Both the position numbers and the translations under genes were made by a program. The notes beneath the pieces were generated by a model, which was given only the letters and a program-made list of their open reading frames with translations, was not told where the DNA came from and made no database searches. DNA of 64,000 nt from Pavona decussata (Eukaryota), in the NCBI GenBank assembly GCA_977016875.1, contig CDRNST010000035.1:1054001-1118000 (forward strand), given 5' to 3'. Positions 8,325-63,000 of the stretch are shown one piece after another. How positions within the stretch are numbered: the first letter of the stretch is position 1; each line of letters starts with the position of its first letter.

Positions 8325-10878
8325 GTAATACCTCCGTTCTCGGTATTTATCTCTTACTTAACCAATGGTTAGCGCTAACCATGCTTCGAGCAACTCAGCC
8401 CAGAACGTTAACATCCCGGTCACGGTCGAAAACCGGAAGCGTTTTTTTCCCTCTNNNNNNNNNNNNNNNNNNNNNNNNNNNNNNNNNNNNNNNNNNNNNN
8501 NNNNNNNNNNNNNNNNNNNNNNNNNNNNNNNNNNNNNNNNNNNNNNNNNNNNNNNNNNNNNNNNNNNNNNNNNNNNNNNNNNNNNNNNNNNNNNNNNNNN
8601 NNNNNNNNNNNNNNNNNNNNNNNNNNNNNNNNNNNNNNNNNNNNNNNNNNNNNNNNNNACGAAGCTCAGAGCTTGTGGGGTCGTGTGAAAATAACTGATT
8701 ACAGTATAAAACTATATTAAAATGGTGATAACATTACATACAGAACACAAAACAATTGACTATAGCAATAAATTGTGTCGTGTAGTAAGGTCACGGACAT
8801 CAAAACTAGCGTTTTCCTCTCCGTTCTCGTCGTTTGAGGTCTACCGTTTCGGCTACCGTTTCGTTGCCGTTATAGTTGAGTGTTACAAAGAAAGTTTAGA
8901 GACCCTCATGGAAATTTAACTTTTTTTATGTTATGTATACATACGTCCTCCCTGGTGTCACTCAACGACCAAGAACGTATACATATACGTCCTCGTACAA
9001 ATTACATCGGTCAGAGTCCGGTCGTTCGATATTCCTTGAATACATCCCCTCTGATTGTTGAAGTAATCCAAGATGGCCGCCGGTTGGAGGGTATACAAGA
9101 CTGTGGTAGGGAAGGGGGCTAATTAATCTCGACAACATTCAAAATGTTTATTGCTTCACAGCAGCGAGACTTTATGTTCGTCTCACAACTCAGTCAAAGT
9201 CAGAAGCTTTGTTTCTTTCACTGTTGGACGAACAACGACAAAAACGGGATCATTCGCGATGAGCAATACGGTAGCCATTTTAATCTCTGTGAATTCTTGA
9301 GGTTTAGATATTAAACATTTCGAAACACGCATTTGGTTGCCTGAAATCAAGGCTTTTGATAGGCTAGTTAGGTCTCCGCATTAAAAATGTTGATCGCTTC
9401 ATAGCAGTGGGATTCTCGCGTAGTGTATGATACGAATGCCTTGGTATATTAGCTATTAAATAGTGGTAGCAAGAAGAAATAAACAGTGCCGTCTTGTAAG
9501 TGCGTTCCTCAATAATTAAAAAACGTTCCGAAAATATTTTGCAAATGTCACGCAACCGACAGTTGCTCTGTCAGACCGTTGTGTCAGACTTGGGATCGCC
9601 TTCAATCCCCTAACTTCAGGGTGAAAGAGTTAAGTAATCCATGTCGCTGATTTGTTCACCCTAAAAGTTAAGTTTTTTGTTTGCCTATTAACTTTGTTTA
9701 TATAATTCCTTTGTCTCCGTGTTGGCTGGCTGTAGCCTCGACATAGCTACCCTAAAAAACGTTAAAACTAATTAAATGAAATTGAAACAATCAGGAAAGG
9801 GCCTACCATAACTAAATTTCTGCTATGCAAGGTATGGTTAGCGAACGCACTCCTATAATTCATGATTACTCCCAGTATTATAGGATTTGCTTTATTTTCC
9901 GTTGAGAAACCGCGCGTGTTTATACATCTGACGTCATCTGTACTCTAATTAACAATTAGACGGCGAGCTCGAGGTTTCTATCGGCTGATAGTTGGCGAGG
10001 GTCGAAGCCCCGAGCCAACTATCAAAGGCGATAGAAACCAAGAGCGAGCCGTCCGATTGTTTAAGCATACCTCAGTGATCGATCTATGAAGCAAAAAAAT
10101 CTTTATATTTCATAAATTTTGATATATTTGTGCAATGATGCATGCTAAATCGCGCGCGCTCTGACAAACTGCCGTCTATCGATCGATAGACGGCACCTGT
10201 GTAGCCAATCAGATTGCGCGTTACGCGATAGTCGGTCACTGAGGTATGCTAATAGACAATAGCTACGAACCAATCAGGGCGCGGGTATTTTGACAGTTAT
10301 TGTAAAAACGTAATCGGGCTATAGCAGTTTCTTATGGCCTGATAAGTGGGCAGTCCTGAAAAGTTGCGTTATTAAGCAATCAAATCGCACTTATAAATCC
10401 CGAATCGACACTTTCTTTTTCCAAGGCCCTTTTCTCTACAAGTTTTTTTCTAGAAGTCGTGAGGTCATCAGAACTAGTAGATAAGAAGTGTTTGTAAGTT
10501 CTCGAACGGGATTGAAATCACCCGGATGCCTACTTGGTATTGTTCGGCTAATAAAACGGGCACTGTTGATACAAAAAATAGAGACAGAAGAGTTATTTAC
10601 CATCCTTCATAACTAACTCAGAATTTAGCACCCCAACTAGACTCTCATCTATTGGCATTTTCTTTCTTAAGAACGACAGGAATATTAAACATATCTTGGC
10701 AATGCCCCGATTTTAAAAGAGGGTCAAGAAAAACGTGAACCGCTTGGGACTCACCAGTGATTCGGGCCTCCGTAAGACGATCATACTCAGTCCGAGTAAG
10801 TAGTCTTTTCAATGACTGGAATAAATACCCCAGGCCACAGCAGTTAAATGACTGCATTTTCTTCTTTGAAGCTTGCAT
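2385..10878 (-). CDS. Small CCGL-leader / TRAF-motif protein, paralog 1 (3 coding exons, 111 aa)
   Basis: Hand-spliced exons 10878-10755 (donor ACTG|GTGAGT), 4420-4316 (tttcag| ... GAAG|GTAAGT) and 2491-2385 (aatag|, TGA); both introns are phase 1 and join in frame. Protein: MQASKKKMQSFNCCGLGYLFQSLKRLLTRTEYDRLTEARITVCTEESPAFPIPVQCTEGPDTGHETKQTSLLHIREGPDECTEENKSKADFGGVTFKLKVQVEVTPAEQHK. The same exon structure recurs in two paralogs. Intron 1 contains an N-gap, so an extra exon cannot be excluded. Confidence 0.8.
7448..7750 (+). mobile_element. LINE (CR1/L2-group) reverse transcriptase C-terminal fragment
   Basis: LQSDLNRLDAWSKDSGLTLNETKCK...ERDLGVFVANDLTWSKQV..RANK, the typical post-YADD region; truncated and frameshifted. 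Confidence 0.85.
7755..8917. repeat. Nested inverted repeats / MITEs around an assembly gap
   Basis: Three concentric inverted pairs: about 7755-7820 with 8853-8917, about 7860-7912 with 8402-8452, and about 7960-7988 with 8365-8395 (GTTGCTCGAAGCATGGTTAGCGCTAACC). Confidence 0.75.
8455..8658. other. Assembly gap
   Basis: Run of N. Confidence 1.
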
Positions 10879-39780: not shown

Positions 39781-42700
39781 TTTATTTATTTATTTGCCCA
39801 AAATCAACAACTGTTACAATATTTCATTCATCACTGTAGTGACAGTATTGAGCAGGAAGTCCCAGAAGGCTTATCAAGGAGACCCCCCTTACTAACTGTT
39901 ACTAATAACTCAGGCGATATATGAAATTATCATAATCTACGTTAAATTATAAATTCCTAATAGGGCAAGGAACAAGCTATATTAGTCATACTCAACGTCA
40001 TTCTCAGAATTTTCCATGGTTGTTTTTCAAGATAGACTGCGTGGTCAAGAGAAAACCCTAGTGATCCACTGACCAACCTGCATCACCATCTTGAAAGGCA
40101 CTTACATTTGGAAAAAAAGACCTAGGAATGAAGTTGGGTCATGCTCTGTCAGGTATGAAAAAAAAAGGGGGGGGGGGGGGGGGAGGAATAAAATTGCCAT
40201 AATCCAGCAAAGTATCTGAGTAAAATAATAATTGCTAAATCTTACATCACATCTCAGAGAACCAATTGCTGATCTAACACCCTTGTGACCCCTACAAAAA
40301 AAGACATAGGCAAAAAACTATCAGAAATAATGACCTCTTCTGCCTCCATGTATTGGTGTGAGTAGTTACAGTTGTAGTCAACTTAACTTGAAAGCATTAC
40401 TTAAGCTAACAAGGGCCATCATCTTTCACTTCTCATTTCTGGTCAAGGAGCTAAGTGCTCCCTGAGAATTGCAGGCTAAATTTATTCTTCTTTTCGTACC
40501 TGTTCCCTGAGAAAAGATTAATTCCTGAACTCAACTTTTTTAAGCAGAAATTAATAATATTGTGTTTACTTCTACACTGTAATATAAAATACATAACCAG
40601 CAAATGATATGAAGTGGCATTCCCGTACCTACAGCTGTACAAACTACCACAGGCATTTCTTTCTTTTACTAATACTATATACATGTACATGTATGTAGCA
40701 GGCAGATGGGTGGGGCGGGGGATTTAAATGAGGGCCAGTCTTTAATTTACAAAATTGAGTTTTGCACTTCTCACCCTGCACTTCCTCCATGTTTGAGACT
40801 GAATTTCCCCACAGGCTTATCAAGGTCATCATGTACAAGAACAATACTGGATGGGTTCACATTGAACATTGTCGCTGCAAAATGGAGGAATTTGCATAGA
40901 ATAGTCAGACATGCAAATAACAAATAATATACTTTAATGACTTTTTAGAAATGAGGTTCAGACTAGTATCATCCTTGTCAAGGTTATTTAATTACATGAA
41001 CAAATGTTGCCTATACAGTCTGTATGTCAACCTAGAAGTGGGATGCTGGATCCAGCAATCAACCACTGGCAACATTATTTTATATGTTGTGGTTCAATTT
41101 TATCTTTGGCGTAAATTTTTTTTTCCATTGTTTCAAACTCATTATCGTACATTACCATACTCAATAACAATATGAAGATAAAATTTAAACCAACATTTGA
41201 ACTACAACATATATACACATACACAGAGAAGATAAAATTCACATTTAAGTTTAACATCTAAGGAAATACTGGAATCCCTAATCTAAGATAAAATCACGTT
41301 GTGCTTCTTGAATAGTACAATGATTATAATCGCCAAAGACCAATAATTTTGGGAAATAGTGCCTGGCAGCCTCAGGTGAAAGCGGGAGACAGGGGACACC
41401 CTAAGTGTGTGCACTGAATCACATGTAGGTGTACACATTTTCAGCCCTCAAAAAATTCTAAGGTTTTTCATCCTAAAAAGAAAAAAGATTTACCAGAAAA
41501 AGTATTTCCCAGGTCACAATTTGAATAATATTCTGACAATGTAAAAATGTTGGCACAAGAGAGCATTTCCACAAATTAAATTGTCAACAATGATACAATC
41601 GCGCAAATGTAAATATTTAGTACAGTTAGCTTCCAGACTCGATTCAATGTATACAGACTGGGTGCACCCCTTAACTGCATAGTTGAATGCATTCCTGCTC
41701 TTGTTACAGGCTTCCACTCTTTTCTGAAGTGGACTATACAGAAACAGGCAAATTCCCACCTCAAGGAAATGTAACACTATATGTAGTCTACCATTAAGGG
41801 CTCAGCTTTTGGGGTACTTAGATTCAATAGCAAATCTCTCAACCCTCACAAGGGAAAGAAGAAATCTATTAAAACGTTTTCTTTACACAAGTCCAATGCA
41901 TTATTAAATCATTATTATCACATAATCAGATAATCTAGCTCTTGACCTAAATTCTAAGCATAATACAGTAGCAAGCACCATTTTCCCAGGACCATCGCAC
42001 AATTCTCTGAGAGGCAAAGTAAAGAGACCGTCAAGAAATTCAAGAACACTTACATCTTTACAGTGGCCAAATTACCAATTACAAAATCAAACATGTATTT
42101 GTTTCAACTCCGCCACCAATGCAGCCAATGTTTTGTTTTTTTTGTTGCAGCACCACAGTTGCCCAAATAGGCACTAACTCTCTAATATTAACTCTCTTAA
42201 TTTTCTGAGAGTTCTGTAGATACCACTGAGTTTCAAGATGGCCTATAGTATAGTGCCACAGGGTAAATATTTGTAACAAAACACATATAATTTTTTTAAT
42301 ATACATGTAAATTTGGAAACAGGTGCGAACAAACCAAGAAGAGGGATAACAGAAATGATTGAAAATTTTTAATTTTACTGACAATGTTTACACCATACTA
42401 TTAGTTATTTGCATAAAATCATGCAATTTTAAAGGAGCTGACTGATTGACAGAGTAACTTAGTGACTTAAGCTGCTTGATAGATTGATTTTTTGCCTGAA
42501 AATTTGCTGACCGTACCTGCTCTTGCGATGCTCTTTCCATTTACATTCATTGCCACAGTAGGTTTCAGGAGTATAAGCCGCTGGTCATTCATTTTTGTGA
42601 CAGCCAAATGAGCCATAGATTTCCTGTTAAACTGCCAGGTTGCTCCCAGCTGTTTGCCCAGACAATCAACCACTAGCATTCCAACACTGTGCCTTGTGTC

Positions 42701-43232
42701 TGGAAGAATGTAATTACCTAAGCCCACAACCTGCAGGAATATAAACTCCATTCAACAATCATATGCATTGTAGCAAAATACAACAGATAACAGTTTGTAA
42801 ACCTAAATCAAAAGAAATGTAATTTTAGGATAGTCATCATGCATCTATTGAAATTACAGATACTCAGTCTACTCAGTACATGTACCCCGGAAAAAATAAC
42901 TCAAGAAGTGTCAAAAAAAAGCCTCTCTCTAAAATAACTACGAGAATTAAACATCCTGGAATAGCCATTACAAGTCATACTGAGGCTTAATGTTGTACTG
43001 CACTGCTAAATTAAAGTTAGTAGCCAAACTTGATTGAGTCATCGATCAAGTCGAGACACAACGAACATTGAGCACTACAAAAAACAGTTACCATTGCGTT
43101 TAGTTTCCTTGCGTCAGTGGCTTGAGCTTGATTTAAACTCCTCTTGCAAAGAAATCTAAATGATTTTGATGCATTCACGATGCTAGGATAAGCTGAAAAT
43201 ACTCGCCAAACACATCTCCCCCTGTCCACCAT
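38572..43232 (-). CDS. PTRH1: Peptidyl-tRNA hydrolase 1 (bacterial-type Pth, probably mitochondrial), 5 exons, 244 aa
   Basis: Exons 43232-43092, 42730-42517, 40874-40775, 40291-40246 and 38805-38572, all GT-AG and in frame. Pth motifs present: VVGLGNY, TRHSVG (catalytic His), LLKP..MNVNG, LVHDDLD, GGSAGGHKG, RVRVGIGRP, YVLSKF. The N-terminus is basic and presequence-like. Confidence 0.95.
39728..39778. repeat. (TAT)n microsatellite
   Basis: Long uninterrupted TAT run in PTRH1 intron 4. Confidence 0.95.
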
Positions 43233-43297
43233 TGTGGAAGAAAAAAACGAGCCCGCGGAAAGTACCAGCGGTAATAGACACAATTCAAGATGGCGGC
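43233..43297. promoter_or_regulatory. Compact bidirectional promoter region of PTRH1/DNLZ with YY1-type motif
   Basis: 57 bp separate the two divergent ATGs. CAAGATGGCGGC (43286-43297) overlaps the DNLZ start codon. Confidence 0.65.
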
Positions 43298-46265
43298 TAC
43301 TCTGTCGTGTCGTTTGTCACGTTGTGGTTATACATTTATTTCCCGTAGTCTTTTTATCAATAATGCCCTGCGTTCAACTTCTTGTTTACCAAGATCTCGA
43401 AAATACCTTTGTTTTAGACGCACTTTATGTGAAAATGCTGGGGACAATGCTTCCAAATCGCTTGGCTCAATCGAACAGAGTTCCAAGTTCCAATTGGTGT
43501 TTACATGTAAAGTTTGCGAGACACGATCCCGAAAGGTTATCAGTAAACAGGCTTACACAAAAGGAGTTGTTATCGTCAAATGCCCAGGATGTAATAACAA
43601 TCACTTGATAGCTGATAACCTCGGTTGGTTTTTCAACGAAAAAAGGTAAGGACATTGGGATTGGAAAACGAGGAAGATGGCGCGCTCAGCGGTATTGTAA
43701 TCGTGTTTTGTGTTTTAATTTTGAAAACGCTTTATTCTAAAAACCAAACAGCTTGTGCCAGTTTAAAGCTAACCCAGTTAAACCAAACTTTAATCCGACC
43801 GTTAAGCACTATAAACCGCTAAATATAGTGCGTTGGGTGCATCCAAATCACCGTCTAACTTCTCCCTACAATGCATTGTCAAGGAAAGAGAAGATACATG
43901 TCCTAAATTCTCAACGCCAACGGACTGAGGAAGTTCATTGTAACCACTGATATCAATTACAGAGAACAATTATTATTATCCATTGGATTCAAAGTGTTAA
44001 CAGTGTATCTTTTTTAACCAAGTTTAATCTTATCTTAAAATGTATATAATATTCTAAAGGGGCATAGTGCCAGGATTACAAGTTGATTGTTTATTAAGGG
44101 AGAAAGCCATGTGTACTATTAAAGCAACAGAGCTGTATTCCAATGTAATGTGTGATGTACATGCAAATTATATGGAATCCCAAATTAACAAGACAATTTT
44201 AATGGTCCATACCATACCATATTCATGTAAAGGCCAATCTTTGTTTATTAGTTAACTTAAGGTTATGAATTTTTATAACCCACCGATTTATTTCTGCATA
44301 TCTCAATGGACAAAATACATCATTTCGTAAAAATCGGAAGGCGGTTATCAGACAATAACAGTCCTCCAGTTTGATAACAGTCTTCCAAATAGTATTTTTT
44401 TTTTTTTTTTTGGTTGACGAGAAAAACAAAGAAAGAACATCACAGCTTTAGGTCTCAGTTGTTGTAATCTAATCAGAGTTTAATAAAATATAACAGTAAA
44501 CTGGTTCTTTTGACATTTCCACAGTAAAGCACACACATCTCAGAAATTAATCAGAGGGTTATATAATAAATAAACCTTTTCCCAGCTTGCTGTATTTTGG
44601 ATGGTAATGCCCTTGGCTTACAGATTGTTTTTAAAATTTCACAGTTACCCGTAAAACTTTGCATCTTGACCAACTGTTCATTTTCAAAAATCTTTCAGCC
44701 TTGGGTTTTATCCTTTGATATACCAGCCACCTGAAGGGGTTTATTTACTAAACATTGGAGGTCTATATTAATCTTTATTAGAAAGCCTGCAGTAACTACA
44801 GCTGTAGCAGTGAGTGTGTCCCTTATCTGAATTTGAAAACTATGTTTACGTTTGTTGCAATAGTCCCAGACTGTTTGAAAGGAATTTTTGTGCCTGTCTC
44901 AATTGTTTTTGTGGCATTGTTGCATTGAATTCATTATCTACTTTACTGAAAATGAAAAAAGCAACCCAAGGACGAAGGTCATAATATATTTTGATAAATG
45001 CAGATTTCCACATGTGCAGAAGTAAGTAACTTAAAATGCCTCCATTTTGTACCAATTCTCATTATTGTATGCAACAGCCATCACTTACCATGATCACTCT
45101 TACCAGAACCATTTCGTTTACAACTAATTTTTATTTTTATACATTTTAAACCAATTTAAAGTGCATACTTACAATTTGCATGGGCTTGGGGTTTGTATTT
45201 ACATGTATCAACTTGAGCAAAAAAGCTGCAAGTGTTGGTGTATATGTTGTGGTTCAATTTTATCCTTGGTTTAATTTTTATTTCCCATTGTTTTAAACTC
45301 ATTATCATACATTACCATACCCCAACACAAAGGGAAATAAAAATTAAACTAAGGATAAAATTGAACCACAACATATACATGTAATAGGTTGAAAGGTTAC
45401 TAAAAACCCAGGATCTTTTTAAAGAGATCTGTGTTCAAGAAGATAATTGTTGAATGTTTGCTGCGTGTGAACAAAAAATTTGACAATTGTCAGTGAGGCA
45501 CAGGCCAGTTGACAACCCTTCACTGGAAATGCAGACAGATGTCATTGTTGTTTGGAAGGAAGGGGGGGGGGGGGGTGGGTGCAGGCGAGGATAATGTTGT
45601 ATCACACATCACACCACTAAGACTTTCAAACTTGTATGTATCCCCTTGTTGCTTTGTATTCATTCACATAACGCTGGCACCAGACGCTCTTAGACTCATA
45701 CCAGCTCGTATTCACCCGATTTGTTGTAACGGATCAAGATTCTCATATCAATATAAAACACATTTTAGTGCCAACGCCGAACACTGTTTGCCTGTTTATT
45801 TCATAATCCTTTTCGTTTCAAAAATTTAATTGCGGAGTAAAACAAGTGACTTCCACCACCATTAAAACGGTTTATGTAAAGGCATTAAAATATTTTCAGC
45901 TCGTACGGGAATGAAAGGCATACTGGTATTATGAAACATCCCCTTGATTCTCAAGGTCGTATTGCGTATGATCGTTGTTTATCAGTGAGCAGTTATACAC
46001 TTTTGCTGGATTGAACCAAACATCTGCTTATTCAATGTAGATCATGGAACACGCTGAGTAAGCTACTGGACATTATCTTTCAGAGCTAAACTGCTTTTTA
46101 TTTCTTTATTTGATTGTTTAACATATTTTTTCATCTCATAGAAACATTGAGGACATACTGGCAGAAAAAGGAGAGGCAGTCAAGAGGTTATCAGACAATG
46201 ACTCTCTGGAGTTTTTGATTGAAGATGACAACGATAAACATACAAAGGACAAGGGAAACACTTAG
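43290..46265 (+). CDS. DNLZ: DNL-type zinc finger protein (Zim17/Tim15/Hep1, mitochondrial Hsp70 escort protein), 2 exons, 159 aa
   Basis: Exons 43290-43645 (AG|GTAAG) and 46142-46265 (catag|, TAG). Contains the zf-DNL signature [41 protein letters not shown], followed by [12 protein letters not shown]. Arg/Ser/Leu-rich mitochondrial presequence. Confidence 0.96.
45241..45377. mobile_element. TA-flanked MITE; second copy at about 41081-41215
   Basis: TIRs TATATGTTGTGGTTCAATTTTATC...GATAAAATTGAACCACAACATATA. One copy lies in the DNLZ intron and one in a PTRH1 intron. Confidence 0.8.
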
Positions 46266-48808: not shown

Positions 48809-49101
48809 GGGGCTTTCCCATCAGATTATCCGTAAATTTAAGTAAGTGACACAGCAAAATTAAACAATAAACGTGAACGATCGATACTGAAGGCAAAAGC
48901 CAGTGAACACCACCGGTAAATAAAAATAAGCCGGTCTTACTTTCATTTCAAATATCTGCTGGAGTACTAGTGGTCAAAATCATACACGGAACGCCGCCTT
49001 GGATTACTTCATGTGCTATTATTGTCGATTTGTGTTTATTAAAAGTAGAGGATTACTTCATATTTTGGTTGGGTAAAATCCCTTAATACTACGCTATATA
49101 A
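48809..49101 (+). promoter_or_regulatory. CARD-only gene A promoter: kB-like sites, IRF-E-like site, TATA box
   Basis: GGGGCTTTCC at 48809-48818 fits GGGRNYYYCC; ACTTTCATTTC at 48939-48949; GGGTAAAATCCC at 49071-49082; TATATAA at 49095-49101. Confidence 0.5.
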
Positions 49102-49194
49102 GTCGTCAGCAAATCGATTGAAATCAGGCCCAACAGCTTACGTTCGTGCTCTCTCTATTTTGGCAGAAATTACAAGTCAGTAAACTTTTCCATT

Positions 49195-50270
49195 ATGGAG
49201 AGAGAAGAGAAAGAAATTATCGACCGTTATTGTGGCCAAATTTGTGAAGACGCTATCCCAGTCGATATGCTGCCGTATCTACCTTGCTTGACTCAGAGCG
49301 ACAAGGAAAAAATCAAATGCGAAGAGACAAACAGTGGTCCCAGGCAAGCTACGGTTAAGTTGTTGTGGCATCTTCGAAGACGGGCCGGTGCTTTTCAAGA
49401 ATTTGTTGTAGCTCTTAGACTTAGCGGTTGCGGACATTTAGCGGATCTTCTTGATCCTCGCGAACAAGGTTTGTGTAGAGATCAGCAGCTCACGTGTTGA
49501 TTACGTGAATTTTAATACGTTTCTATGTGTGATCGATATAGGAACAGTGAAAAAATCATTCCTGAAAGGTTCTGAAGGATTTGTATCCCATAGATATAGA
49601 CGAAAACGTAATTATATAACGAAAATAGAGGAAAAATGCCCTCACCTCTTAGATTTTTGTTATATGTTCGTAAAATTATGTTTTCTTTTTCGTTCATAGA
49701 ACGTACAGAGGATATCATGCACAATGAACTGAACCCAAACGATCTGCCGGACGGAGATGGGATTATTTTGTTTCATGATCAGGTTAAGTACTATAGATAC
49801 CAAGTTATACGCGGCGGTATTGGGCGTCAACTGTTGCAAACAGTTGAAAATCCACTAGTAGTTTATTAAAAACATGGACAATGCATGCATGGGACGCAGA
49901 ATTTAAAACAAAACTTTTAATTGAAAGATATTCGCTGTAATGCATTCCACAGCGTTCCAAATCCCTTGAAGTGAAAGTGTAAAACGCCCTTAGCCTTCGA
50001 CTTAGCCACAATGATATAACCTAATTGGTATTTGTAATTTGTAACTTCTTTACCAATAAAATAGCAGAATTTCCTCCCCTGAAAAGCGATGACAATCCCG
50101 TGGTCAGAAAAGGGTCTTAACACTGGGAAAACTGAGCTGCTACTTAACTGGGCATGCACAAGGAAGACATTAATTTTCCTTCCATTTTATTTACTCGTAG
50201 TACCTCTTTCAGTATAGCGTGATCTGTATACTTTCCACAGGTTCCCTTGGATGACGTCAATTACCCATGA
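49195..50270 (+). CDS. MAVS/RIG-I-type CARD-only protein A (3 coding exons, 128 aa)
   Basis: Exons 49195-49468 (G|GTTTGT), 49700-49782 (catag| ... CAG|GTTAAG) and 50241-50270 (ccacag|, TGA). The CARD contains MLPYLPCLT, LRRRAGAFQEFVVALR and GHLADLL, matching the human MAVS CARD (ILPYLPCLT...RRPGWVEYFIAALR...LADEV). Acidic tail ends VPLDDVNYP. Confidence 0.85.
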
Positions 50271-53200
50271 CAAATGAGACAAGCAAATTTAATCTCAAAT
50301 TGTAGTGTAAGTTGTGTCTTCGCTTTTCCGTTAAATTAATGCACCGTCAGGACTTACTTTTATGGCTTACTTTTGAAATATTTGATGTATTCTAGACTAC
50401 TAAAAATAAAACAGCTTATAACTACTCTCTGTTTACTTTATGAAAGTAGAAGATATGTATCTGTTGATGCAGTCGAGGTCAATTAATGGCCCCTTTTACA
50501 AGGCACCGTTCTGAGAATTCCTCTTTTTTTATCCAGCTGCTGATCTATTTGAACACCTTAAGGCAAGCCCTCTAAATTGGCTAATAAATTCTGTCCTGGG
50601 AGCGTCCCATTTAAAGTTGACTTCACCACAAACTGTAGGCGTAATGAATTCCCGGACGCGTAGTCAAGGAAAAATATCTTGATTTACAATGATTCGAAAT
50701 TTAATTAATTTAACTGATTTCTATGTCCGTCACATAAATTATATTAACGTGAGAATTTGTTTCTCTCAATAGTTTTTTTGAGGACGCTGGACACTTTATA
50801 GATGGCTGCAGATAAATTGATTGCTCGTCATTTGAGATTAGCGTGGACAGCAGTGCTGACGCTGAAGTCGACGTTTTCTATCGATTTGAACAATTTTACT
50901 TCAAATGTTTTCAAGGTGGATCTTTGAAACAATTTCTAGGGAAGGAGATAAACAAATGGTACAACTTTAAACACTTCTCGGTCAATTAACTTGAAGTACG
51001 GTATTTTTTTGTAACACACCGATTTTATAATATGTAAAGCTCTTTTTATATATTTAAACTAGATCTATGCCTAGCACAAGCTGTTTCAAAATTACAAGAA
51101 ATTGTTGGAATTGTTATAAAATAGAGTAGTTGGTTTTAAGTTGATTTTTAGGCAGAGCCATTCACTTGTAAATAGGTAAGCTTTTCACGGTATGTTTTCT
51201 TGGCAATGGGTAATGAAAAAACAGTACCACATTGTATTACTGGGATACTTGCAGCAACATTCTGACTTTTGGTTCGAAATGAAATTGAAACTTAGATCAA
51301 TACACGCAGCTGGTTTTCTTTTTCGAATAAGGGAAAATCACCTTTTCCGTATGTAGCGGGAATTTGTTTTCGGTTACGCATTTGTTTATGTCGCCCTGTC
51401 AGGAAAATTTAGTGTGGTTAGCTTAATTCACAGCTGACTTCTTATTATCATAATCAATTTATCGAACTTTAGCCCAAGTAGTTTATATTTACAATTAGTT
51501 GAGTATCCTTTTTGAATTTTCTACCCTTTTCATTGTTGATAGATAACATCAATTGTCAAACTAATATTAAAAATCGAAGAAATAACACGTACATTAAAGG
51601 AAGATCACGCACTTATTTTGGTTTATTTATACTCCTTACTCTAAACTCAGTTTGTTATCCCACCTTATGCTAATTTGCTTAATCAAGCAACCTTACTCAC
51701 GCTGGATAGCCCAGCATGCAAGGCAAAGTCCAGAATGTCCCTTAATTTCATATTAATATAAACTCCAATAAAAAGCGAAACTGGTTATATATAATGACTA
51801 TTAAGGGCGGAATACACCTAAATTTCAGCAAATTTGAACGAAATTTGAAGAGTTTTAAGAAGGGATAGAGGAAAGAAAATGATTTTTGGAACAATACACC
51901 CACGTAAGAGCACCCCAGGTTGCTAGTGGACTAACTTGGTGTCCGTCTATTAATTATTGACTACAAATTCTAATTTTAAAACTTCACTAAATCTTCAATA
52001 TTTCTTATTTCTCTTAATTTTACCAATCCTTCTAGAAAAACTATCTCCTCCCAAATATACCCAAAAATCACCCCATAATTCACAAACCACCCCACAACAT
52101 AGGTTCACGGGATGAGTGTAGAGTTTTTGAATTGCTTGAAACGTGAACGAGATATTTCCATTAAAGCCATGTCATGTCAACTGGCGGAAAAATGGCGTTT
52201 AGGTTGAATACCCCCTTAAGACAAACATTTCAAGAAAATACTTGATGTAATCGACATCAACCTAAAAGATGCTAAGAAATCCACGACTTCAAGACTTCTA
52301 CCAGAGTTGTGAATGAAAACAGTAATTTTATGACGTTGTAGGACGAAAACAAGCTTCGCACCAAAACGAGGCTGCGCCTCCTGCACATCTAAGAAAATGT
52401 GTCCCACATGGAAGGAAAAGACGCTGTCGCGTCTTATATATATGTTTTCAGCATCATCAGGTTTTTAAGAGCTCCCTCGTGCGGGTGGACCGGTGGGGGT
52501 GGGGCTCTGCAGAGACTCTGCGCCCAAGACAGTTTCGAAAGTGCAGGAAGATTTTAATAGAAAACTCGCGATTTTCAGCCGATGGCGCGGTGGCGTAAAT
52601 AATAGACATTTTTACAATGTTTTCGGTCTCCAATCAATAATTTTTGAATGAAACAATCCTTTTTTTTTTAACATAAACAAACATAAGCCGATGCAGAGCG
52701 AACCAACAACGGGTAATCCCAAGTGGTCAAGATAGCTCCATCTTGCCCGCTCGGACAGCCAATCACAGCGCAGGATTTGACTCATCTTGCTTGCTCGCGG
52801 AGCAAGCCATAAAATTAAAAAAAGATATCAATCAGACTTTATGCTTGGTCAGGAAAAAAACATTTATAGGAGATACTACAGACTACATTTTTATGTTGGC
52901 ACTAGAGATGAAAAGACTTCGGTTACACTTTGTTTGGTTTTGGCTGCATATTAACACGGATGACAAAAATAGTAGCTACTTTTCTTAATATTTTTGGAAT
53001 GCATCACACTCTAGTTGTTTTATTTTCTAGGGAGGAAATCGGAGATCACAGCGTCTTAAAGGGTCACCCAGAAGCCTTAAATAGGAACCAACCTAACAAC
53101 TTTCGAGAAATCCTCATGATTGAGGCTCTTAATAATTAAAGTTCAGCGTATGGATCCAGGAAAATTCGCCCTTGTGGTAACTAAAGTATCAATGACTGTA

Positions 53201-54689
53201 ATTAGTGTTCAAAGAGGAGACTATGTGTCTGTAGCCGCTGGAAATTGAAACTCGGCACCTTACGCTTGTAAATAAACTAAATTTGACATTTGAATCTTGT
53301 GCCTGATTTGAGTTATTAAGCCCACCATATGTTTGACTTTAAAAACGAAAAACTTTAGTAAGCAGCTAACGGCGAACTGTATATTTTTCAACGACGAGAG
53401 TACTGCTGACCTATGCAAATGACAATAAACCTTTCAAAGAAAAAGACCTGAAAAGAAAGATTCACATAAATGGAAGAAAATTGCACGGGAAGGTAGAAAT
53501 AGAGGATATTACATGACCGTTCTGTGCTTTGTTGTGTTGTATCCTTTGAGTGGATGATTTTGAATATGTGAAACATATATTTGAACTTTGAGTGACCACT
53601 ATTTTTTATGTGCGTTAGGTGAAAGTTATTCAGCGTAAAAGATATCAAGAATGTCACCTAAAGAGGGGCATGTCAGGCAGTGTTTCTGCCTAATGACGCC
53701 ACAGGTCCGCCACATCAAAGGCAGTCACCATGGTATCATCAGCCGTGAGTGCCGAGATACTAAGATCAATCAGTTTCGTTCAGTTACAAAATTGTCTTTA
53801 CTTATTTGGCAATATTTGAGTTTAACATTAAATGTTTATTCGAGCCTCCATTCTCCAGTCTAGTCTCTAGTCGTTTTTCCGCAGCATTTAACAAGTCAGC
53901 AGATTTTTTCTTTCAATTATATCTAATTCTGCCACACAGAAATTACTAAGAAGACAAAATAGTTTGCCTATTTTGAAAGTGCATTTGAGAGACCCCAAAA
54001 ACTCAAAACTAAAAGATATTTACGCACAATTCACGTATTGTTTTACAGTTCTAGTTAGAAGGTTAAGAAAATAAATTATCTCCTTGAACTATCCTAATCC
54101 AAGGAAAATTGATGACATCGAAAGTGAACCCAAAAGATCTCTCTACGAGAAGTGTCCGAAGCTGAGGACTGGGGACTGAGGATTATTATTAGCTTCGTGT
54201 GCCATTGCAAGATTGTAAAATTAATTATTTAGATCAAAATGAGCTAAATAAAGATTATTATAATTAGGGGATGACAAATCTCATTTGCTATGTCGAATGG
54301 ATATCAAGATCAACAGTTTCACTATAGAGTTCCAAGACATTTTCGACCGTCCACGGAGGAATGTGGCCAAAATACGGAAAGATCTGCCGTTTTGCCATTA
54401 AAACGTCAGCGTTGACAAGTCGCCTGCCCGTTGTTGACGATCGAGAAAATGGTCTCCTAGCCGTGGAATTTTTGTAGTATTGGATGTACCAAATAAGGAG
54501 GCTGTTCAAGGAGACCCGCAGGCTTGTTTCCCACTGTTTTTAAAAGTCTTAGTTATAACAATTTGGCTCTGTAGGTTAAATTTTGGCAAATACGATCTCC
54601 ACTACTGTCAAAAAACCTACTTGAATACGTCCGTGATTCCTTCTTCTGTTTGAAATAGTGATAAAGTGGAAACTTTAAACTGTTAGCTG

Positions 54690-54927
54690 GGGCCCGTTTC
54701 TCGAAAGTCCCGGTAACTTACCGGGCCCGATAAGTATCTTTGGTGATAAATGTTTCATAACAGAAGTTAATTTTTGTTACCTTTGAACACTAAATTTTAA
54801 AATCCTATAATGCTATGAAAATATTGGCTAAGTACCATGTCTGTAATCATTGTGTAATCGGTGAAAAAGCATTTAAAAATATACTTATCGGGCCCGGTAA
54901 GTTCCGGGACTTTCGAGAAATGCGCCC
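54690..54927. mobile_element. Second copy of the PIF/Harbinger-like MITE
   Basis: Colinear and highly similar to 507-745; flanked by CTG/CAG (CWG). Confidence 0.85.
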
Positions 54928-55579
54928 CAGCTGCTTACAAAGATTGGATAAAACGTCAAACTGGTTAAGCTGGTAAACTAACAAAGTAAGGTAATAGTAA
55001 TGTTTGCATTCCGTAACTAGTAAACGTTTGTCCTCCGCCAGTCTTTGGGGAGGGGGAGGGGAAGTCCTCCCATATGCAGCCTATATTAGCTTGATTTAGG
55101 CAAGAAAAATGGAGTTTCACATCAGACTTTCTGTAAAAGTTACTGAGCACCAAAGCAATATTGCAAGTGAAGGGTACGATGAGGACATAAGCAATTGAAC
55201 TCTAACGTGTTCTGTAAACAGTTTTCACTTTAGAGATCTCTTAGTATAGTAAAAATGCTCTCTAAAGGATTTTATCCAAGGACTCAATTTCAAAAGGCGT
55301 CAATCTGATAGTCTAGACTGCATCATTTTCACGTTAAATTTGTAAAATCAGCTCCAAGATTAAAGACCAAGAAATAGATACAACTCGATTCATGTATCAT
55401 AATCTTTCAATACCTCTTCGGTGCAAATGTCTTCAACAATATCTTATCTCGAGTGGGATTGGAACACCTTTTCACACTCCTCCCCAGGAAAGGGGTTTGC
55501 TTGCTGATTCTGGAAGAGTTGAGAAAGAAGTTTTCGTAATGACTGGAAACTTGTGGTCCAGAGCAATGTTGTTTTCAAA

Positions 55580-56130
55580 CATTGTTGGTTTGGGGCTCTT
55601 GTGGTCAAGCTTTTTTCTCAAACTTGGAATCCATACATGTCAGAGCGGCAAAAATAATATTTAACTTAGATTGGTGTACGCCAAGCAAGGAGGTTCTTGC
55701 CGCAGCAAAATGGAATACCTTGGAGACTATGTATGAGAAACGATTATTAATTTTAGCGCATCAGGCTTATTATTATCTTTTACCATGTCCTATGAACTGT
55801 CTTTTTGTAAAGTATGTAAGTAGCTACGATTTCAGGAGGAAAATGACCTTCAAGTTACCCAGGCCTAGGACTGATATGATCAAGAAATCATGTTCATACA
55901 AGTCAATTATTCGGTGGAATGCCCTGGAAAACCAAATGAGATCAATTTGCGACATTGACGCTTTTAAAGGGTCACTCAAGAGTACTTTTCAGCCACATAT
56001 ATTGTAAATACGTAGAATTCTTGTGATTAGTTTAGGACGTTTAATTTAACATAACTTTCTTGTTGCTTGCAAGGCTTTATGAAAGAACACGACTACAAAT
56101 AACGGAATCCATCGGCAAATAAAAGTTTTA
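55580..56130 (+). mobile_element. LINE (L2/Crack-group) ORF2 C-terminus and 3' end
   Basis: LVWGSC..LESIHVRAAKII..KWNTL..YDFRR..KLPRPRTD..KKSCSY..RWNAL..FKGSLK, the typical non-LTR ORF2 tail. Confidence 0.85.
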
Positions 56131-58137
56131 TTATACAGCGCGCGAAAGGGAAAACAGCATTGAGTATACTGTCAAATAACAATTTTACTATATAACTGCA
56201 GAAATTCTCGCGCGCTCAGTGGCTAATTTTCATCGTCAATAAGCGGAGACACATGAATTTATAATTTATGTGATGTTGACGCAACGAACGACAACGGGGA
56301 ATTTGAAAACAACCAAAGTCAATCTGTCACTTTTCAACCAATACAAAGTGTTCCTTTTTCCATTAACCAAATAGAGAGCGAGACAGGTTTTTGATTTTGG
56401 TCGCGTCAGATTAATAAAATATACTTTTCTTGCATTTTTATCCCGCATTTTGACTTCATTTGAAGTAAAGCCACTTGAAGCAAAGGAGGACGGTAGAGTC
56501 AACCTCTTTCCGAAAAGACCCTGGCAACGATTTGGTTTCGTGACGTCATTAAGTTCACGGAAACTGTCATATTCATTTGATCCAAAGGCGATTGAAAGGA
56601 AGCTTTTGTTGACTTTTCTTATTAAACCGTTACATTCATTTTAGTAACACCTTTCTAAATTCGAAATGGGGACTGTTTAACAAATAGACGGTAGTTTTCT
56701 ATGGCCTATACTCTCAAAGACCACAAAATGACTTCTCAGAAAGTTCAAAACTCTAGTGAACCACGAGTGGTTTCACTACCAAGTTTTGAACATTTTATGG
56801 TGTCATATTATGGTCTATAAGAGTATAGACCATAGAAAACTGCTGTTGATTTTTGTTTGTTTGTTTTGTTTTGTTTTTCTACAACAACACGAAAAATGTA
56901 CGAGCGGAATTGGCTTTATTTTCCGTTAACTGAGAAAGCGCTCGTGTTACATCTGACATAATTTTCATTGCCTGTACTCTTATAGACAATAGCTACGAAC
57001 CAATCAGAGTGTAGGAATATGAACGTTATTGTAAAATAAATATTATGCGTGCTAAAAGTCTAAATGCTATACAGAAAGGTATCTATTAGCGAAAAGGAAC
57101 AAATAATGTATGTTGACCACATGACGTACAAATCGTAAAAGTTTACCACAAAACAAGAATAGCATTTCCTTCCCCGCACATCTTTAAGACAGTTTAATTA
57201 CGACAGTTTAATTAAAAAACAAAACCAGAATATGCACCTAGTAGGTGAGTGTTACTACTGCTGCTGTAATCGAAAGACTTTAATAGAAGACAGCTTGTAC
57301 TCGGGGAATTGTACTTGCAAAAGCAACATGTGAACTAGATTGGATTCTTTACAGACAGTGACGAAATACAAAATTAATGACCGAAAGAATAAACTGATTA
57401 ACAAACTTGAGAATGACTTCAGTTCTAAAATTGTTATATTTGTCCGTCAATTGCTAAAATTGGTCGCGCAAGCTTATATCAAATCTCAAGTAGCTATAAT
57501 ATGCAAATAGTCAATGTTACACGTCGCTTTCCCACACAGAAAGATGAATTACCATACAGAATAATCGATAACAACTTCTCCAGCCAAACATTTTTTTTTT
57601 AAATAAGCGATACATATGCCTTTAGAATTCGAAGTAAAACAGTTTGAGATTTTATTGAGTGCGTGCAAATTACAGAAGTTAAAGAATTTCGGCTCGAATG
57701 ATCATATCAACATTTGAAACAAACATGAATTACCGTACTATAGCGTTTTCCCAAGTCTTGTAAAATCCGTTTGAAGTCCGAAGTTTGGTTTCAATTTTTT
57801 GCCGAATTTAGTCTTTCAAATAAATCCGAACACGAAATGAATTTTCATCGATTTTAAGACATGCATGTCCTCTATTTCTGCGGTTGATCAGTCTACAGGG
57901 ATATGTCTTTCCATTCTGAGTTTCTCGGAGATGAAAGGAAAACATGTATAGTATTTCTTGAAAATTGAGGCCGATCCACGAGGTGCTTTATTTTGAATAC
58001 ATATTCGTATTAAAAATCGGTCATATAAAACCGAGAGAAAACCAATATCTGTTCGTTTTCTAATTCCGAACAGTTCCGAACACAATCCGAAAAATGGCCG
58101 CCTTACGGACTAAACGCGTTGCCTGATAGTGCCTACT

Positions 58138-58192
58138 AATCTCGTACCCAGATCGACATCTCCGAACCAACTGAGATCTGGGTACGAGATTA
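58138..58192. mobile_element. Miniature hairpin element
   Basis: TAATCTCGTACCCAGATC...GATCTGGGTACGAGATTA perfect inverted repeat. Confidence 0.7.
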
Positions 58193-58540
58193 ACTGCCTA
58201 CGTGCCTCAACGTCAGTGCAGTAGCCACAACAATCGAAAATGTCAAAGCTAAATTTAGCCCATCATGTGCCATGTGTTCATCCAGTTTAGGGGTTTTTCA
58301 AAGTTAAGGGGGTTTCTCATCAAAATATCTGTCAAGTCACTGGGCACTAAAACAATACAATTGAATAAAAATTTAAAAAGCTTTAAATTAAATGCGCTTA
58401 GTAACTGGATAACCCTGACTTTAAATTCAAATTAAAAATCCCTCAGACCGCTGGAAAGGTAAACACTACACATGCTTGGACACATTCTAGAATTATCTAT
58501 GCGTGTTCATCAAAAATAGACGATGACTTCAAAATTTGTT

Positions 58541-58570
58541 GGGTAAAATCCCAAAATACTTCACTATATA
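58541..58570 (+). promoter_or_regulatory. CARD-only gene B promoter: conserved kB-like GGGTAAAATCCC and TATA
   Basis: The 12-mer is identical to copy A and has the same spacing to TATATA (58565-58570). Confidence 0.5.
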
Positions 58571-58667
58571 CATTGTCAACAAATCGATTGAAGTCAGCCT
58601 CAACACGGCTCGTTCGTGCTATTTTCACTACTGGCAGAGATTTAGCAAGGGAATAAATTTTAACGAC

Positions 58668-60050
58668 ATGAATCGAGAAGAGAGAGAAAAAATTGATCAG
58701 TTTTCTCCCCAAATCGCCGAAGATGCTATTCCAGTCGATATGTTGCCGTATTTACCTTGCTTGACGCAAGGCGACAAGGAAATAATCAAATGCGAAGAGA
58801 TGAACAGTGGTCCGATGAGAGCTACGCTTGAGTTGTTGTCGCGTCTTCGAAGACGGACCGGTGCTTTTCAAGAATTTGTTGAAGCTCTTAGACTAAGTGG
58901 TTGCGGACATTTAGCGGATCTTCTTGATCCTCGCGAACAAGGTATGTGTAGAGTTACATGTATTTCTATTTCAGAGATTGAATATCATTATAAGCTTGTC
59001 TCAATATTCTCGGCCAAGTACACGTGTGTCCTGACTATATAACTAGATGTTTTGGCGTGTGGTATCGCTGTATATACTTTTACATACCAAAACATCTAAT
59101 AAGAGATTTATCATCGACACCTTTTCTGATAGGTAGCAATGAAAACTATGAGGAAAACAGAAGCAAAATGAGTGCGTGCACGTTTTAAAATTGTTTTTTT
59201 ACTGTACTAATATTACCATGACGGCACCAAGCAGGTTTTTTTTAAAATACAAATGATTGACTGTCTGAAATATCGCATCTGTCGTACTGTGTAGTCTATA
59301 AATTGCTTCAATTTTAGTAAAATCGTACCGTCATATTATTTCAAAATCAAATACACGAAAAGTAACGTCGGAAACCGAAATTGTATAGAGCTTTTTGCTG
59401 CTTCTCGAAACCGGTTTCATTCTAAAAACTATAAAAATTATGGGATAAACTCATCAAGGCGAGAGGTCAGTATCCATCGCATCCTCGCATAATCGGCCTC
59501 CAGTAAACTGGATTAGTATGCGCGTCCGATAAGACCCAGCCAGAAGCAAGTAGAAACCTGACTTTCGAGTAATTAAAGTTACGGTCGAATCTCACGTGCT
59601 ATATACAGTAGACAATGACGTACATTTTTGTTTTAAACTTTTCACTGTTGTGTAAAATTTTCCGCTTTCCGATTCCGTTCACAGAAGATAGAGGAGACGT
59701 TAGACGGAACGAAAACCTAAACGATCAGTTGCCGTTTCGCGACCAGGTAAGTAAGGCGTTACATTATTTGTATTTGCTGTCAATGGAAACATGAACAACA
59801 GACGCAAATTTTCAAGAAAAAAAGTCGTCTTATTCCAAAAATTGACTTTACTTTGCTACCAATGGAATAATTTTAATTTCCTTCCTAGAAAGTATCGATA
59901 CTATTGTGTTCACAAAGGAACCACCTTACTGCTACTCAACCGAAAGCTCTTTGCACTAACACATTTTATTCTATTTGTTGTTAGTAACTCTTTATGACGT
60001 GATCTGGTTACTTTCCACAGGTTGCCTTGGATGACGTCAATCATGTATGA
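58668..60050 (+). CDS. MAVS/RIG-I-type CARD-only protein B (3 coding exons, 121 aa)
   Basis: Exons 58668-58941 (G|GTATGT), 59685-59746 (tcacag| ... CAG|GTAAGT) and 60021-60050 (ccacag|, TGA). Same 274-nt CARD exon, intron phases and stop position as copy A. Tail: EDRGDVRRNENLNDQLPFRDQVALDDVNHV. Confidence 0.87.
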
Positions 60051-63000
60051 CAAATAAAAACAAGCAAATTTAAAATTAATAGTGTGAGTTATATATAATT
60101 ATTTTTTCTGCCCAACTGAAGTAACGAGACTAATTTAAACCCACCTTCACTAATTGATCTCTTTCTTTTCATATTCAGTCACATATTCCAGACTACTGAA
60201 AAAAAAAATAGACACTTGTATCCTGTTAAGTTCGTTGCCACTAATACAGCGGTATTAGTTTATGACTATGCGGGAAAAGTAGATCTTAGCAAGGGCTATT
60301 TGAATCCAAAAAGAAAATTGGATGTAACAACGCATGTTTCATAGATACTAAAGCATCAATGTTTCTAAAAAGCTTTAAAATACATATCTATATGAAATTT
60401 TCTTTCCAAAATAAAAGCTTAATTATCTTTGAAAAATACGAGGTTACCTCCAATTTTCTTTTTGTATTCAAATAGCCCTTGCTAAGATCTGCTTTCTCCG
60501 CGTAGTCATATAAAACCGCGCAATTAAAGCACCGTCTTTAGGAAACCCGAGTTTCTCGGACCATCCCTAGATGCGCAAAACGAATTCGAAGTGGAATAAA
60601 TGCTGTTATGGGCTTTTTTTTATTTATAAGTAGCCTGGAATAAATATGTAATCGCATGAGGCCGAGTAAAATTAAGCATCAATTTTCATGCAAATTTGTA
60701 TTCCTTTTTTTTTTTTAGCTGAACTAAGAATGTATAAACCGAATGTTGGGAATATATTAATTGATTCACCTTAGTGAAGCTTTCTCCCGTTAGAAAATCA
60801 CTCAAACACAGATCGATAAATATAGCAAAGCCGGGGTGCATCCAAAAAAGGACCTTGCAGGAAAATTTCTTGCAAATCAGCTGAATTTGACCTGCTCCTT
60901 CCCCTCATTTAAAGGGAACTTGTCACGTTCCGTTATCTTTTGTTGCACTGAGAAGCTGTAGCGAAGCCGGAAAGTTTTTTCTTTTTTTTTTTTTGTAAGA
61001 CACGAAAGTTTACCTTGAGGCATTTCCTGTAGCACTTTATTTCCATGCGTTATTTTGCACAAACAACCCGGATTGAAAGTCAAACTCCGAAGAACTGATT
61101 GTTGTTGGGTGGAAAATGAAGAAACTAAGCTAAAGAATGTGCGTGCTCAACCAATCAGGAACGGGTATTTTCACCGCTCAACCAATCCAGCCGAAGTGAG
61201 TTACTTTTTCCCCGGTCAAAGGAAAATTAAGGAAAACTGCACTCTGTCTCGACCAATCAGCATTCAGCAGTTTTACCCTCTATGTTATAAATATATTTAA
61301 ACTTTCTTTCTTATTACTTTCTACGTAGGAGGTTTGGCACTGCATAAATGGCTGACGGACACAAGCTTAACATTTTTATTGCTCATCATACCGTTGAGGT
61401 CAACGTGGATCGCAGAGTTAATAAGTCCGTCGTTGAACCAGTTTTACTTGAAGTATTTTCAATGTGTCTGCTAGTGAAGAACTGAATGTGTGGAGAGTAT
61501 ATGCCATTGTAAATCAAAGCTTATAATGCTGAGGAATTAATTATGATTTTTCCTCTTGCTTATTTTGCATCAGTACAATTTAGTGCATTTCCAAATCTAT
61601 CTCACTTGACTGATTCATCCCCGTTATATTCCTGCACATGCTTTGCAGTTAGTGCTGGAAGTAAGGGATCGAAGTAATGCCCGCAATCTTCATCTATCAC
61701 TGCATATGCGGCGATCATGTCAAGGCTGAGAGAATGAAGAAAATATTTATTGAGATAATAAAAGACATGCTTAAGCGCGATGCGCATAAATTAAATTTCA
61801 TCATAGTTTAGAGATAGTCTTATATGTAGCGGTACAGTTTGTCATGGCGTCTAGAACGTGTAATGTAAACTTTATTATTTGTATTTTTATAATAAAAGGC
61901 ATGCTTTTAAATAAATGACTGTGATTACTTAACCATTTGGTTTCAGTGACCTATTAAATTAATTTAAACTTTACTTGCTTTATAGAGCGGTTTACCATTC
62001 AGTGTCGTTAAACCAAAACTGTAATTATTCTGACCAATGAAAACAGACGTAAACAGCGCAAAAAACCAATCAGAAGGCGAAGCAAGTACCGCATGTAACT
62101 GTCAAAAGCAGAAAAACGCGTGCGAAGAAGTCACGACTGATTGGCCTCACATTGGCTGAGAAAATGGCGTAAAGCAAAATCAAGGTCAACTTCTCTTGGC
62201 AAGCAGGTAACAAATATGAAATACGAACAGAAAAATTTAGGTTTCTTAAAATTTTCCGATTTGGACTTTTCGCACCCCGAAGATCGTGAATAAACGACCC
62301 AATCACGGTGAACTGGTCAGCGGCTAAGAAAAAAAAACCACGGTGGACAGTGAATTCCTTCCAATGTGATGGACTTGCTTTACTAAAACTCTTCCAGCGT
62401 TTTTGTTACAATCGAATTGGCAAGACGTGTTTGATCTTGCTTCGTGTGTAAAACGTTCAAAACAATAGTTGTCTTATTTCTTAATTTGTTACTAACATTC
62501 GTTGATAACATGTTCGATGGAAATATGGCCGTCTTATGTCGAATGTTACAACTTTGACCTCTCACTTGTCGAACAGAAACTGGATTGCGGCCAAATGTTT
62601 TAACAGATTTATCACAGTCTATGGATTGAAAATTGCACTGATATGTGGAAGAGCCGTGAGAACGACCCCCATTTTGCGATTTATACTTCTGAACTTGGGC
62701 GAAATAACATGTTGCGCGATAAGTGCTCAAAGTAAATAAACTTTGTGCCCTCAGATTTATTACAGTTATTAAAGCTAATGATTGAAATTCGTCATATAAT
62801 AAACGTGAAGGGTCACCGTTTATAACCAGCGAATTAGGGAATTTTGAATGATCTGTATCAGTTATCCAAAACTAACGGCTGCAAATCTTGCAAAATTCAT
62901 GATCTCGCCAGTGGGTTTCGAGCAGTCAGCCCGGGGGTTGGAAAATTGAATATGAGGATCTTAGAGATGTCCACAAAATTTTTCACCGTTTTTGTACTCG

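Follow-up and report, generated by a model that had tools for sequence, protein, structure and literature searches.

Tandem CARD-only genes next to two RIG-I-like receptor genes in the stony coral Pavona decussata: a probable pair of coral CARDIB paralogs

The window analyzed here is a stretch of 64,000 nucleotides from the stony coral Pavona decussata (C35:1054001-1118000 of a 602 Mb assembly; runs of N at 8455-8658 and 35278-35456). It contains two small tandem genes, labeled copy 1 and copy 2, whose first exons each encode a CARD resembling those of MAVS and of the RIG-I-like receptors (RLRs), and two RLR genes follow just beyond its end. The two small genes are probably coral forms of CARDIB, a CARD-only gene described in a sea anemone. 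Positions without a contig prefix are positions in the window.

A first-pass annotation, made from the sequence of the window, had described two CARD genes in which a CARD exon is joined to two micro-exons and translation stops at the same place. The reading frames and splice sites agree with that description (Table 1). Both exon-1 frames are free of stop codons, all four introns have GT..AG ends (49468|49700, 49782|50241, 58941|59685 and 59746|60021), and the predicted products are 128 amino acids for copy 1 and 121 amino acids for copy 2, the frames ending in VPLDDVNYP and VALDDVNHV, respectively.

Table 1. Exons, promoters and flanking exons of the CARD gene pair (window positions)
Feature	Position	Strand	Details
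Peptidyl-tRNA hydrolase exon	42467-42748	-	upstream of copy 1
zf-DNL exon	43290-43646	+	upstream of copy 1
Copy 1 promoter	49071-49101	+	GGGTAAAATCCC at 49071-49082, then TATATAA at 49095-49101
Copy 1 exon 1	49195-49468	+	274 nt, 91 whole codons (49195-49467) plus 1 base; complete CARD_2 domain; phase-1 donor; orthologous exons in relatives
Copy 1 exon 2	49700-49782	+	83 nt; acidic linker RTEDIMHNELNPNDLPDGDGIILFHDQ; placed by AG/GT sites and translation; same length, frame and sites in closer relative
Copy 1 exon 3	50241-50306	+	VPLDDVNYP, stop at 50268-50270, then 3' untranslated region to predicted GTAAGT donor at 50307
Copy 2 promoter	58541-58570	+	GGGTAAAATCCC at 58541-58552, then TATATA at 58565-58570
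Copy 2 exon 1	58596-58941	+	5' untranslated region from about 58596, ATG at 58668, 91 whole codons (58668-58940; 274 nt from ATG); CARD_2 domain; RNA-supported
Copy 2 exon 2	59685-59746	+	62 nt; linker DRGDVRRNENLNDQLPFRDQ; both junctions in RNA of four runs
Copy 2 exon 3	60021-60083	+	VALDDVNHV, stop at 60048-60050, 33 nt of 3' untranslated region, GTGAGT donor
Copy 2 exon 4	61329-61932	+	3' untranslated region only; AATAAA at 61893 and 61909; contig ends 61861-61932

Transcription was assessed with Logan RNA contigs from four runs belonging to three studies, placed on C35:1112450-1118440 (5991 bases, from copy 2 through the first RLR exon); rare isoforms can escape such contigs. The copy-2 junctions that had been predicted from the sequence, 58941|59685 and 59746|60021, were confirmed as spliced in all four runs, at depths of 55-250, and an unspliced contig spanning intron 2 had a depth of only 5-9. 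The same four runs contained one additional copy-2 intron with GT..AG ends (60083|61329), located 33 nt past the stop codon, so that the last exon consists purely of 3' untranslated region (3'UTR). Copy-2 contigs started at 58596, 58597 or 58609, about 31 nt downstream of the TATA box, and the transcript ends at about 61932. Among the RNA contigs of these four runs no splice joint from copy 2 to RLR exons was found, and the first RLR exon has separate contigs and its own donor at C35:1118436. Copy-2 transcripts thus use both micro-exons and end before the RLR gene; they do not skip the micro-exons and run on into helicase exons, which the first-pass annotation had named as one of two outcomes that would overturn its model, the other being a grouping of the CARD with caspase or NLR CARDs (see below for its rejection).

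The copy-1 gene model is a prediction from canonical splice sites and from intact orthologous exons in two related genomes. Since the same conserved donor is present, as GTAAGT at 50307, copy 1 probably has a 3'UTR intron as well; when copy-2 exon 4 was used to look for the corresponding exon of copy 1, no alignment resulted. P0004 was considered as evidence of copy-1 expression and rejected, its contig being metagenomic DNA.

Three minor features of copy 2 were also recorded. Its second exon is 45 nt (15 codons) shorter than in both related genomes, and the short form is the one that is spliced in RNA. In the copy-2 orthologue of the more distant relative (L025:11180-11200), TT is found in place of the exon-2 donor GT, so that either the assembly is wrong at this point or the donor of that species is broken or has shifted. 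Within intron 3, the stretch at 60250-60450 has contig depths of 1500-3900 and numerous loose ends, presumably owing to a dispersed transcribed repeat.

The proteins were characterized by profile searches carried out exon by exon and by fold prediction for a natural spliced homologue, P0010. A match to the Pfam family CARD_2 (PF16739), suggested as a check in the first-pass annotation, was obtained for both exon-1 translations, with scores of 63.1 bits for copy 1 and 71.7 bits for copy 2 (E values 2e-17 and 5e-20; cut-off 28.2 bits) over profile positions 1-91 of 93. The generic CARD profile PF00619 gave 16.2 and 21.9 bits, under its cut-off of 23.9 and far beneath the CARD_2 scores. By sequence, the nearest solved structures are the CARDs of MAVS (E about 1e-6), followed by those of MDA5 and RIG-I. 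The model of P0010 shows a six-helix CARD (pLDDT >90) followed by a disordered tail (pLDDT <50), and the nearest folds in Foldseek are again the MAVS and RIG-I CARDs, with a TM score of about 0.8 and a probability of 1.00, although all Foldseek E values were >0.001 because the domain is short. A caspase- or NLR-type CARD was rejected, since PF00619 fell below its cut-off and the CARDs of Apaf-1 and caspase-9 ranked under those of MAVS and the RLRs; the proteins therefore group with MAVS and RLR CARDs by sequence and by fold. Every member of the family has D24 and R62/R63, which align with MAVS E26 and R64/R65, and E26 and R64 are the residues altered in E26R and R64C, two deposited mutants of the horse MAVS CARD. 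The octapeptide LPYLPCLT, which had been taken as a hallmark of the MAVS CARD, is not specific to MAVS at this locus, as the adjacent RLR-2 CARD carries it too.

On the basis of these profiles and the fold model, a single CARD of MAVS/RLR type appears to be the only folded domain of both proteins. In agreement with the first-pass annotation, no membrane segment was found in either protein, the highest hydropathy of any 19-residue segment being 0.97, and a pattern search revealed no strict TRAF2, TRAF6 or pLxIS motif outside the folded domain; the sole match to a TRAF expression, AFQE, lies inside helix 5. The CARD is followed by an acidic linker of 20-27 residues. The label "CARD-only" given to these genes holds in the sense that the CARD is the sole folded domain, but the proteins also end in a motif that is conserved across stony corals. 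This tail has the consensus F-x-x-Q-[VI]-x-L-[DE]-D-V-N-H-x, of which exons 2 and 3 encode one half each. Its core, Q-V-x-L-D-D-V-N-H, has been kept in eight named coral species belonging to seven genera, and carriers of the motif include both copies, Orbicella, Oculina, Pocillopora, a Stylophora-like sequence, Montipora and, more loosely, Porites.

Conservation of the 3' part of the gene extends beyond the coding sequence. The exon-3 region is near-invariant among four genes (the two paralogs in each of two species), including 20 intronic bases, part of the UTR and the donor. The first 33-36 nt of the 3'UTR (60051-60083 in copy 2 and 50271-50306 in copy 1), which contain ACAAGCAAAT, are conserved above the synonymous sites of the CARD exon, as is the donor of the intron in this UTR, and because of this excess a regulatory role is suggested for that UTR segment or its intron.

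The identity of the genes was approached through their relatives. CARDIB (NVE16599) is a MAVS-similar, CARD-only gene that adjoins RLRb in Nematostella vectensis, and its linkage to RLR genes has also been reported in Exaiptasia, Xenia and Acropora muricata (Sharoni et al., bioRxiv 10.1101/2025.11.22.689925); the first-pass annotation had named CARDIB, as a gene beside an anthozoan RLR, and proposed it as a possible homolog, and the publication describes such a gene. Word searches recovered 50-odd small CARD_2 proteins, the named ones all scleractinian (Porites, Montipora, Orbicella, Oculina and Pocillopora), and no Nematostella protein was among these matches. Other corals have full-length spliced mRNAs that comprise 119-139 codons. 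Both copies fall within the coral CARD-only proteins in a tree built on the CARD region, and the RLR CARDs of the present genome are set apart in their own clade (support 96/87). P0046 and P0048, which are near-copies of Stylophora A0A2B4RF26, both lie within the coral CARD-only family, and A0A2B4RF26 is sister to NVE16599 in the published tree (bioRxiv 10.1101/2025.11.22.689925). The proposed homology with CARDIB is supported, indirectly, by tree placement, by the bridging sequence A0A2B4RF26 and by synteny with RLR genes.

That synteny becomes visible on the contig beyond the window, where the first-pass annotation had advised looking for an RLR helicase gene. Two tandem RLR genes, RLR-1 and RLR-2, lie directly downstream of copy 2 on the same strand. 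Their CARD_2 exons are at C35:1118160 and 1140978, the second about 23 kb further on, and one RIG-I C-terminal domain stands behind each (C35:1135849-1136929 and 1152628-1153920). The ATG of RLR-1 is 157 nt past the end of the window (equivalent to window position 64157) and about 2.2 kb beyond the end of the copy-2 transcript. The gene order is thus peptidyl-tRNA hydrolase, zf-DNL, copy 1, copy 2, RLR-1 and RLR-2, and the first two, whose exons are arranged and oriented alike in both related assemblies, mark the 5' border of a CARDIB-RLR cluster. In the RLR CARD exons, as in both copies, the CARD is contained entirely in exon 1, which ends in phase 1 after LLDP, and because of this shared layout an origin of CARDIB long ago through partial duplication of the 5' end of an RLR gene fits the data.

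The promoters of the two kinds of gene carry different elements. In both copies GGGTAAAATCCC is situated 12 nt ahead of the TATA box, an arrangement kept in both copies of a relative. This promoter module matches twice within the window, where 0.01 matches are expected, and is restricted to these two sites across the 602 Mb genome. The promoters of RLR-1 and RLR-2 have instead a kB-like palindrome, GGGAATTCCCC or GGGAATACCCC, about 45 nt ahead of a GGCTATATAA box.

The two copies can be aligned to one another over two stretches only, namely promoter and exon 1 (49032-49480 with 58503-58953, 82% identity) and the exon-3 region (50198-50292 with 59982-60073, 83% identity); their introns are no longer alignable. 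Both copies are present in two related assemblies, tandem, collinear with the window and with intact tail exons, at a spacing of 6.7 kb in ERZ26692669 and about 28 kb in ERZ26692694. The tree pairs each copy with its own orthologues (support for the copy-1 group 97/92), and other coral lineages seem to have a single gene. The duplication predates the split from the two related genomes. An assembly artefact or haplotig was rejected, since the copies differ at 18% of bases, their introns cannot be aligned and both occur in two other assemblies. Between the copies, exon 1 has a synonymous divergence (dS) of 0.34 and a ratio of nonsynonymous to synonymous divergence (dN/dS) of 0.35, while the RLR-1 and RLR-2 CARD exons differ by a dS of about 1.0 with a dN/dS of 0.18. 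The RLR genes therefore duplicated earlier than the CARDIB genes, and a joint duplication of the two families was rejected on this difference and on the order CARDIB-CARDIB-RLR-RLR.

Purifying selection on the genes is shown by the comparison with the relatives. Copy 2 and its orthologue in the more distant relative are 90-92% identical in coding exons and 69-78% identical in introns, and against the closer relative exon 1 has a dS of 0.11 and a dN/dS of 0.13 in copy 2, compared with 0.10 and 0.66 in copy 1. Faster evolution of copy 1 is suggestive at best, the difference not being significant (Fisher p about 0.1). The CARDs of the two copies differ at 19 of 91 residues, and 14 of the 19 fall on helix 1 (residues 2-17) or helix 4 (residues 50-59; hypergeometric P 5e-5), with none in helix 2, which contains the LPYLPCLT stretch, and none in helix 6. 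Most of the derived states sit in copy 1. In assemblies of death-fold domains, one side of the type I contact is made up of helices 1 and 4. Because the differences cluster on that side, it is a reasonable inference from the sequences that the copies may differ in partner preference, as the first-pass annotation had supposed; the helix-1 share of the clustering may simply mirror a weaker constraint there.

Taken together, the placement among coral CARD-only proteins, the bridging sequence and the adjoining receptors make us fairly confident that both genes are tandem paralogs of the stony-coral CARDIB orthologue, that is, RLR partners of the CARDIB type. Several points weigh against this assignment. 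Orthology with NVE16599, although well supported, is indirect, resting on one bridging sequence (A0A2B4RF26) and on synteny. The coral proteins are about 30-40 residues longer, with a conserved end motif seemingly absent from the anemone protein, and because of these additional residues and their motif their function may differ from that of anemone CARDIB. The structure of the copy-1 gene is predicted from DNA, and copy 1 has lost two near-invariant arginines, R51 (R51Q) and R59 (R59H), which 15 of 16 outgroup sequences retain.

In Nematostella, CARDIB binds RLRb, knock-out and over-expression show basal repression of immune genes, and CARDIB is needed for the response to poly(I:C) (bioRxiv 10.1101/2025.11.22.689925). 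By homology, the CARD of each coral protein would contact the single N-terminal CARD of a neighboring RLR, this contact would keep the receptor silent within a complex as long as the cell is unstimulated, and the complex would be required for signaling once double-stranded RNA is sensed, a role at once repressive and licensing. The conserved C-terminal motif could serve as a docking peptide for a further partner, borne on the disordered acidic linker, and the two copies might divide the labor between them. It is tempting to speculate further that coral CARDIB is a two-part, soluble, anchor-less counterpart of MAVS, in which the CARD would engage the RLR, the linker would present the tail peptide to a signaling partner, and the paralogs, whose differences lie mainly on the face of helices 1 and 4, would couple different RLRs or receptor states to that partner; we regard this extension as possible but rather doubtful. 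If true, it would make coral CARDIB a functional counterpart of MAVS without the anchor.

A related explanation, the chief competitor of this one but in our view unlikely, is that the proteins are soluble positive adaptors like MAVS and not repressors, the CARD taking the signal from an RLR and the tail peptide recruiting an effector such as a TRAF protein. The breadth of conservation of the tail motif, in eight named species of seven genera and on a disordered linker, would suit such a role, as would the counterparts of MAVS E26 and R64/R65 (D24 and R62/R63) kept throughout the family and the name "mitochondrial antiviral-signaling protein-like" that NCBI gives to the Orbicella member. However, a membrane anchor is lacking, linker and tail contain no strict TRAF2 or TRAF6 motif, the tail partner is only hypothetical, and the published phylogeny separates cnidarian CARDs from vertebrate MAVS (bioRxiv 10.1101/2025.11.22.689925). 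The basal repression seen on knock-out and over-expression in Nematostella also speaks against positive adaptors, but since Nematostella CARDIB is itself needed for activation by poly(I:C), the adaptor and CARDIB readings partly overlap.

It is likewise improbable, in our judgment, that copy 2 alone is the working CARDIB and that copy 1 is redundant, drifting under relaxed constraint toward loss or an unrelated role. The dN/dS of copy 1 exceeds that of copy 2 in the same species pair, a long branch leads to its orthologue in the more distant relative, and it carries the derived states R51Q, E55K, S58W and R59H at otherwise conserved positions of helix 4, of which E55K and S58W postdate the split from the closer relative; that its gene is predicted from DNA would agree with such a course. 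On the other hand, dN/dS is below 1 and the difference in rate is not significant, the frame is intact with canonical splice sites, all 29 family-invariant residues are retained, and conservation across three genomes extends to the promoter, exon 2, the tail exon and the UTR donor, with all of which a decaying copy 1 agrees poorly. Finally, it is very improbable that the CARD exons belong to the downstream RLR gene as alternative first exons, or that they are non-coding relics left by a partial RLR duplication. They do lie nearby on the same strand with the same exon-1 layout, and a solitary CARD exon of RLR type at another locus (see below) shows that partial copies arise. The copy-2 contigs, however, splice to the micro-exons, reach a stop and end at polyadenylation signals, which rejects the first-exon version for copy 2, with the limit that rare isoforms may escape such contigs. 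RLR exon 1 is covered by separate contigs and has a promoter of its own, and other corals have spliced CARD-only mRNAs.

The coral CARDIB genes can be compared with four known systems. Like Nematostella CARDIB, they encode a small, soluble protein with a single MAVS-similar CARD_2 as its only fold and adjoin an RLR gene. Unlike it, they occur here as two diverged tandem copies, keep a full helix 1, and add the disordered acidic linker and the C-terminal motif from two micro-exons; the anemone protein, as far as optical character recognition of the construct and primer sequences in the supplement allows it to be read, is about 92 amino acids long, ends in ...QKQNYRQPQP and appears to lack the tail motif. 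Vertebrate MAVS provides the best match in sequence and fold, with an identical LPYLPCLT and the charged counterparts noted above, yet the coral proteins have no proline-rich region, strict TRAF motif or C-terminal membrane anchor, the published phylogeny gives no support for orthology, and the anemone homologue represses basal signaling. The neighboring RLR CARDs belong to the same Pfam family and share the exon-1 CARD, the phase-1 intron after LLDP and TATA promoters with the two copies, but they form a clade of their own, have a kB-like GGGAATTCCCC promoter in place of GGGTAAAATCCC, and their exons run on into a helicase.

Small CARD-only regulators are also known from primates, where CARD16/COP, CARD17/INCA and CARD18/ICEBERG are located next to caspase-1, their target. 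They resemble the coral genes in adjoining the CARD gene that they regulate and in being probably derived from its first exon, and differ in having a caspase-1-type CARD, in acting in the inflammasome pathway, in being much younger and in lacking a conserved tail motif.

A survey in 2021 found MAVS missing in all 15 cnidarians examined, and how cnidarian RIG-I-like receptors signal without MAVS has been an open point, for which CARDIB, reported in late 2025, was the first candidate partner. The CARDIB family and its linkage to RLR genes in a stony coral were thus already known, and the present find, while real, is mostly of known kind and extends a known system. Its additions, which are modest, are the duplication, the tail motif, the 3'UTR intron and the promoter element. 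The locus shows the probable CARDIB of a reef-building coral as duplicated, expressed, under selection and directly upstream of an RLR pair, and the tail motif and private promoter element, neither of which is mentioned in the anemone work, offer handles for experiments on coral antiviral immunity.

Two further RLR-related sequences were noted elsewhere in the genome. A lone RLR-type CARD exon at C200:3231784-3232050 has 67% amino acid identity to the RLR-1 CARD and an RLR-type promoter (GGGGATTCCCC plus the common 5'UTR block), with a stop 14 codons into the would-be intron 1 and an AATAAA directly after it. No further RLR exons were found within 10 kb upstream or 20 kb downstream, and this exon may represent a third, younger CARD-only gene derived from a partial RLR duplication. 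Its relatives are P0053-P0055, of which the P0053 contigs look genomic. At C77:2107641-2107946 on the minus strand, a match to the RIG-I C-terminal domain (32.8 bits) falls within a single open frame of 1350 codons, which could be an intronless RLR- or Dicer-like gene.

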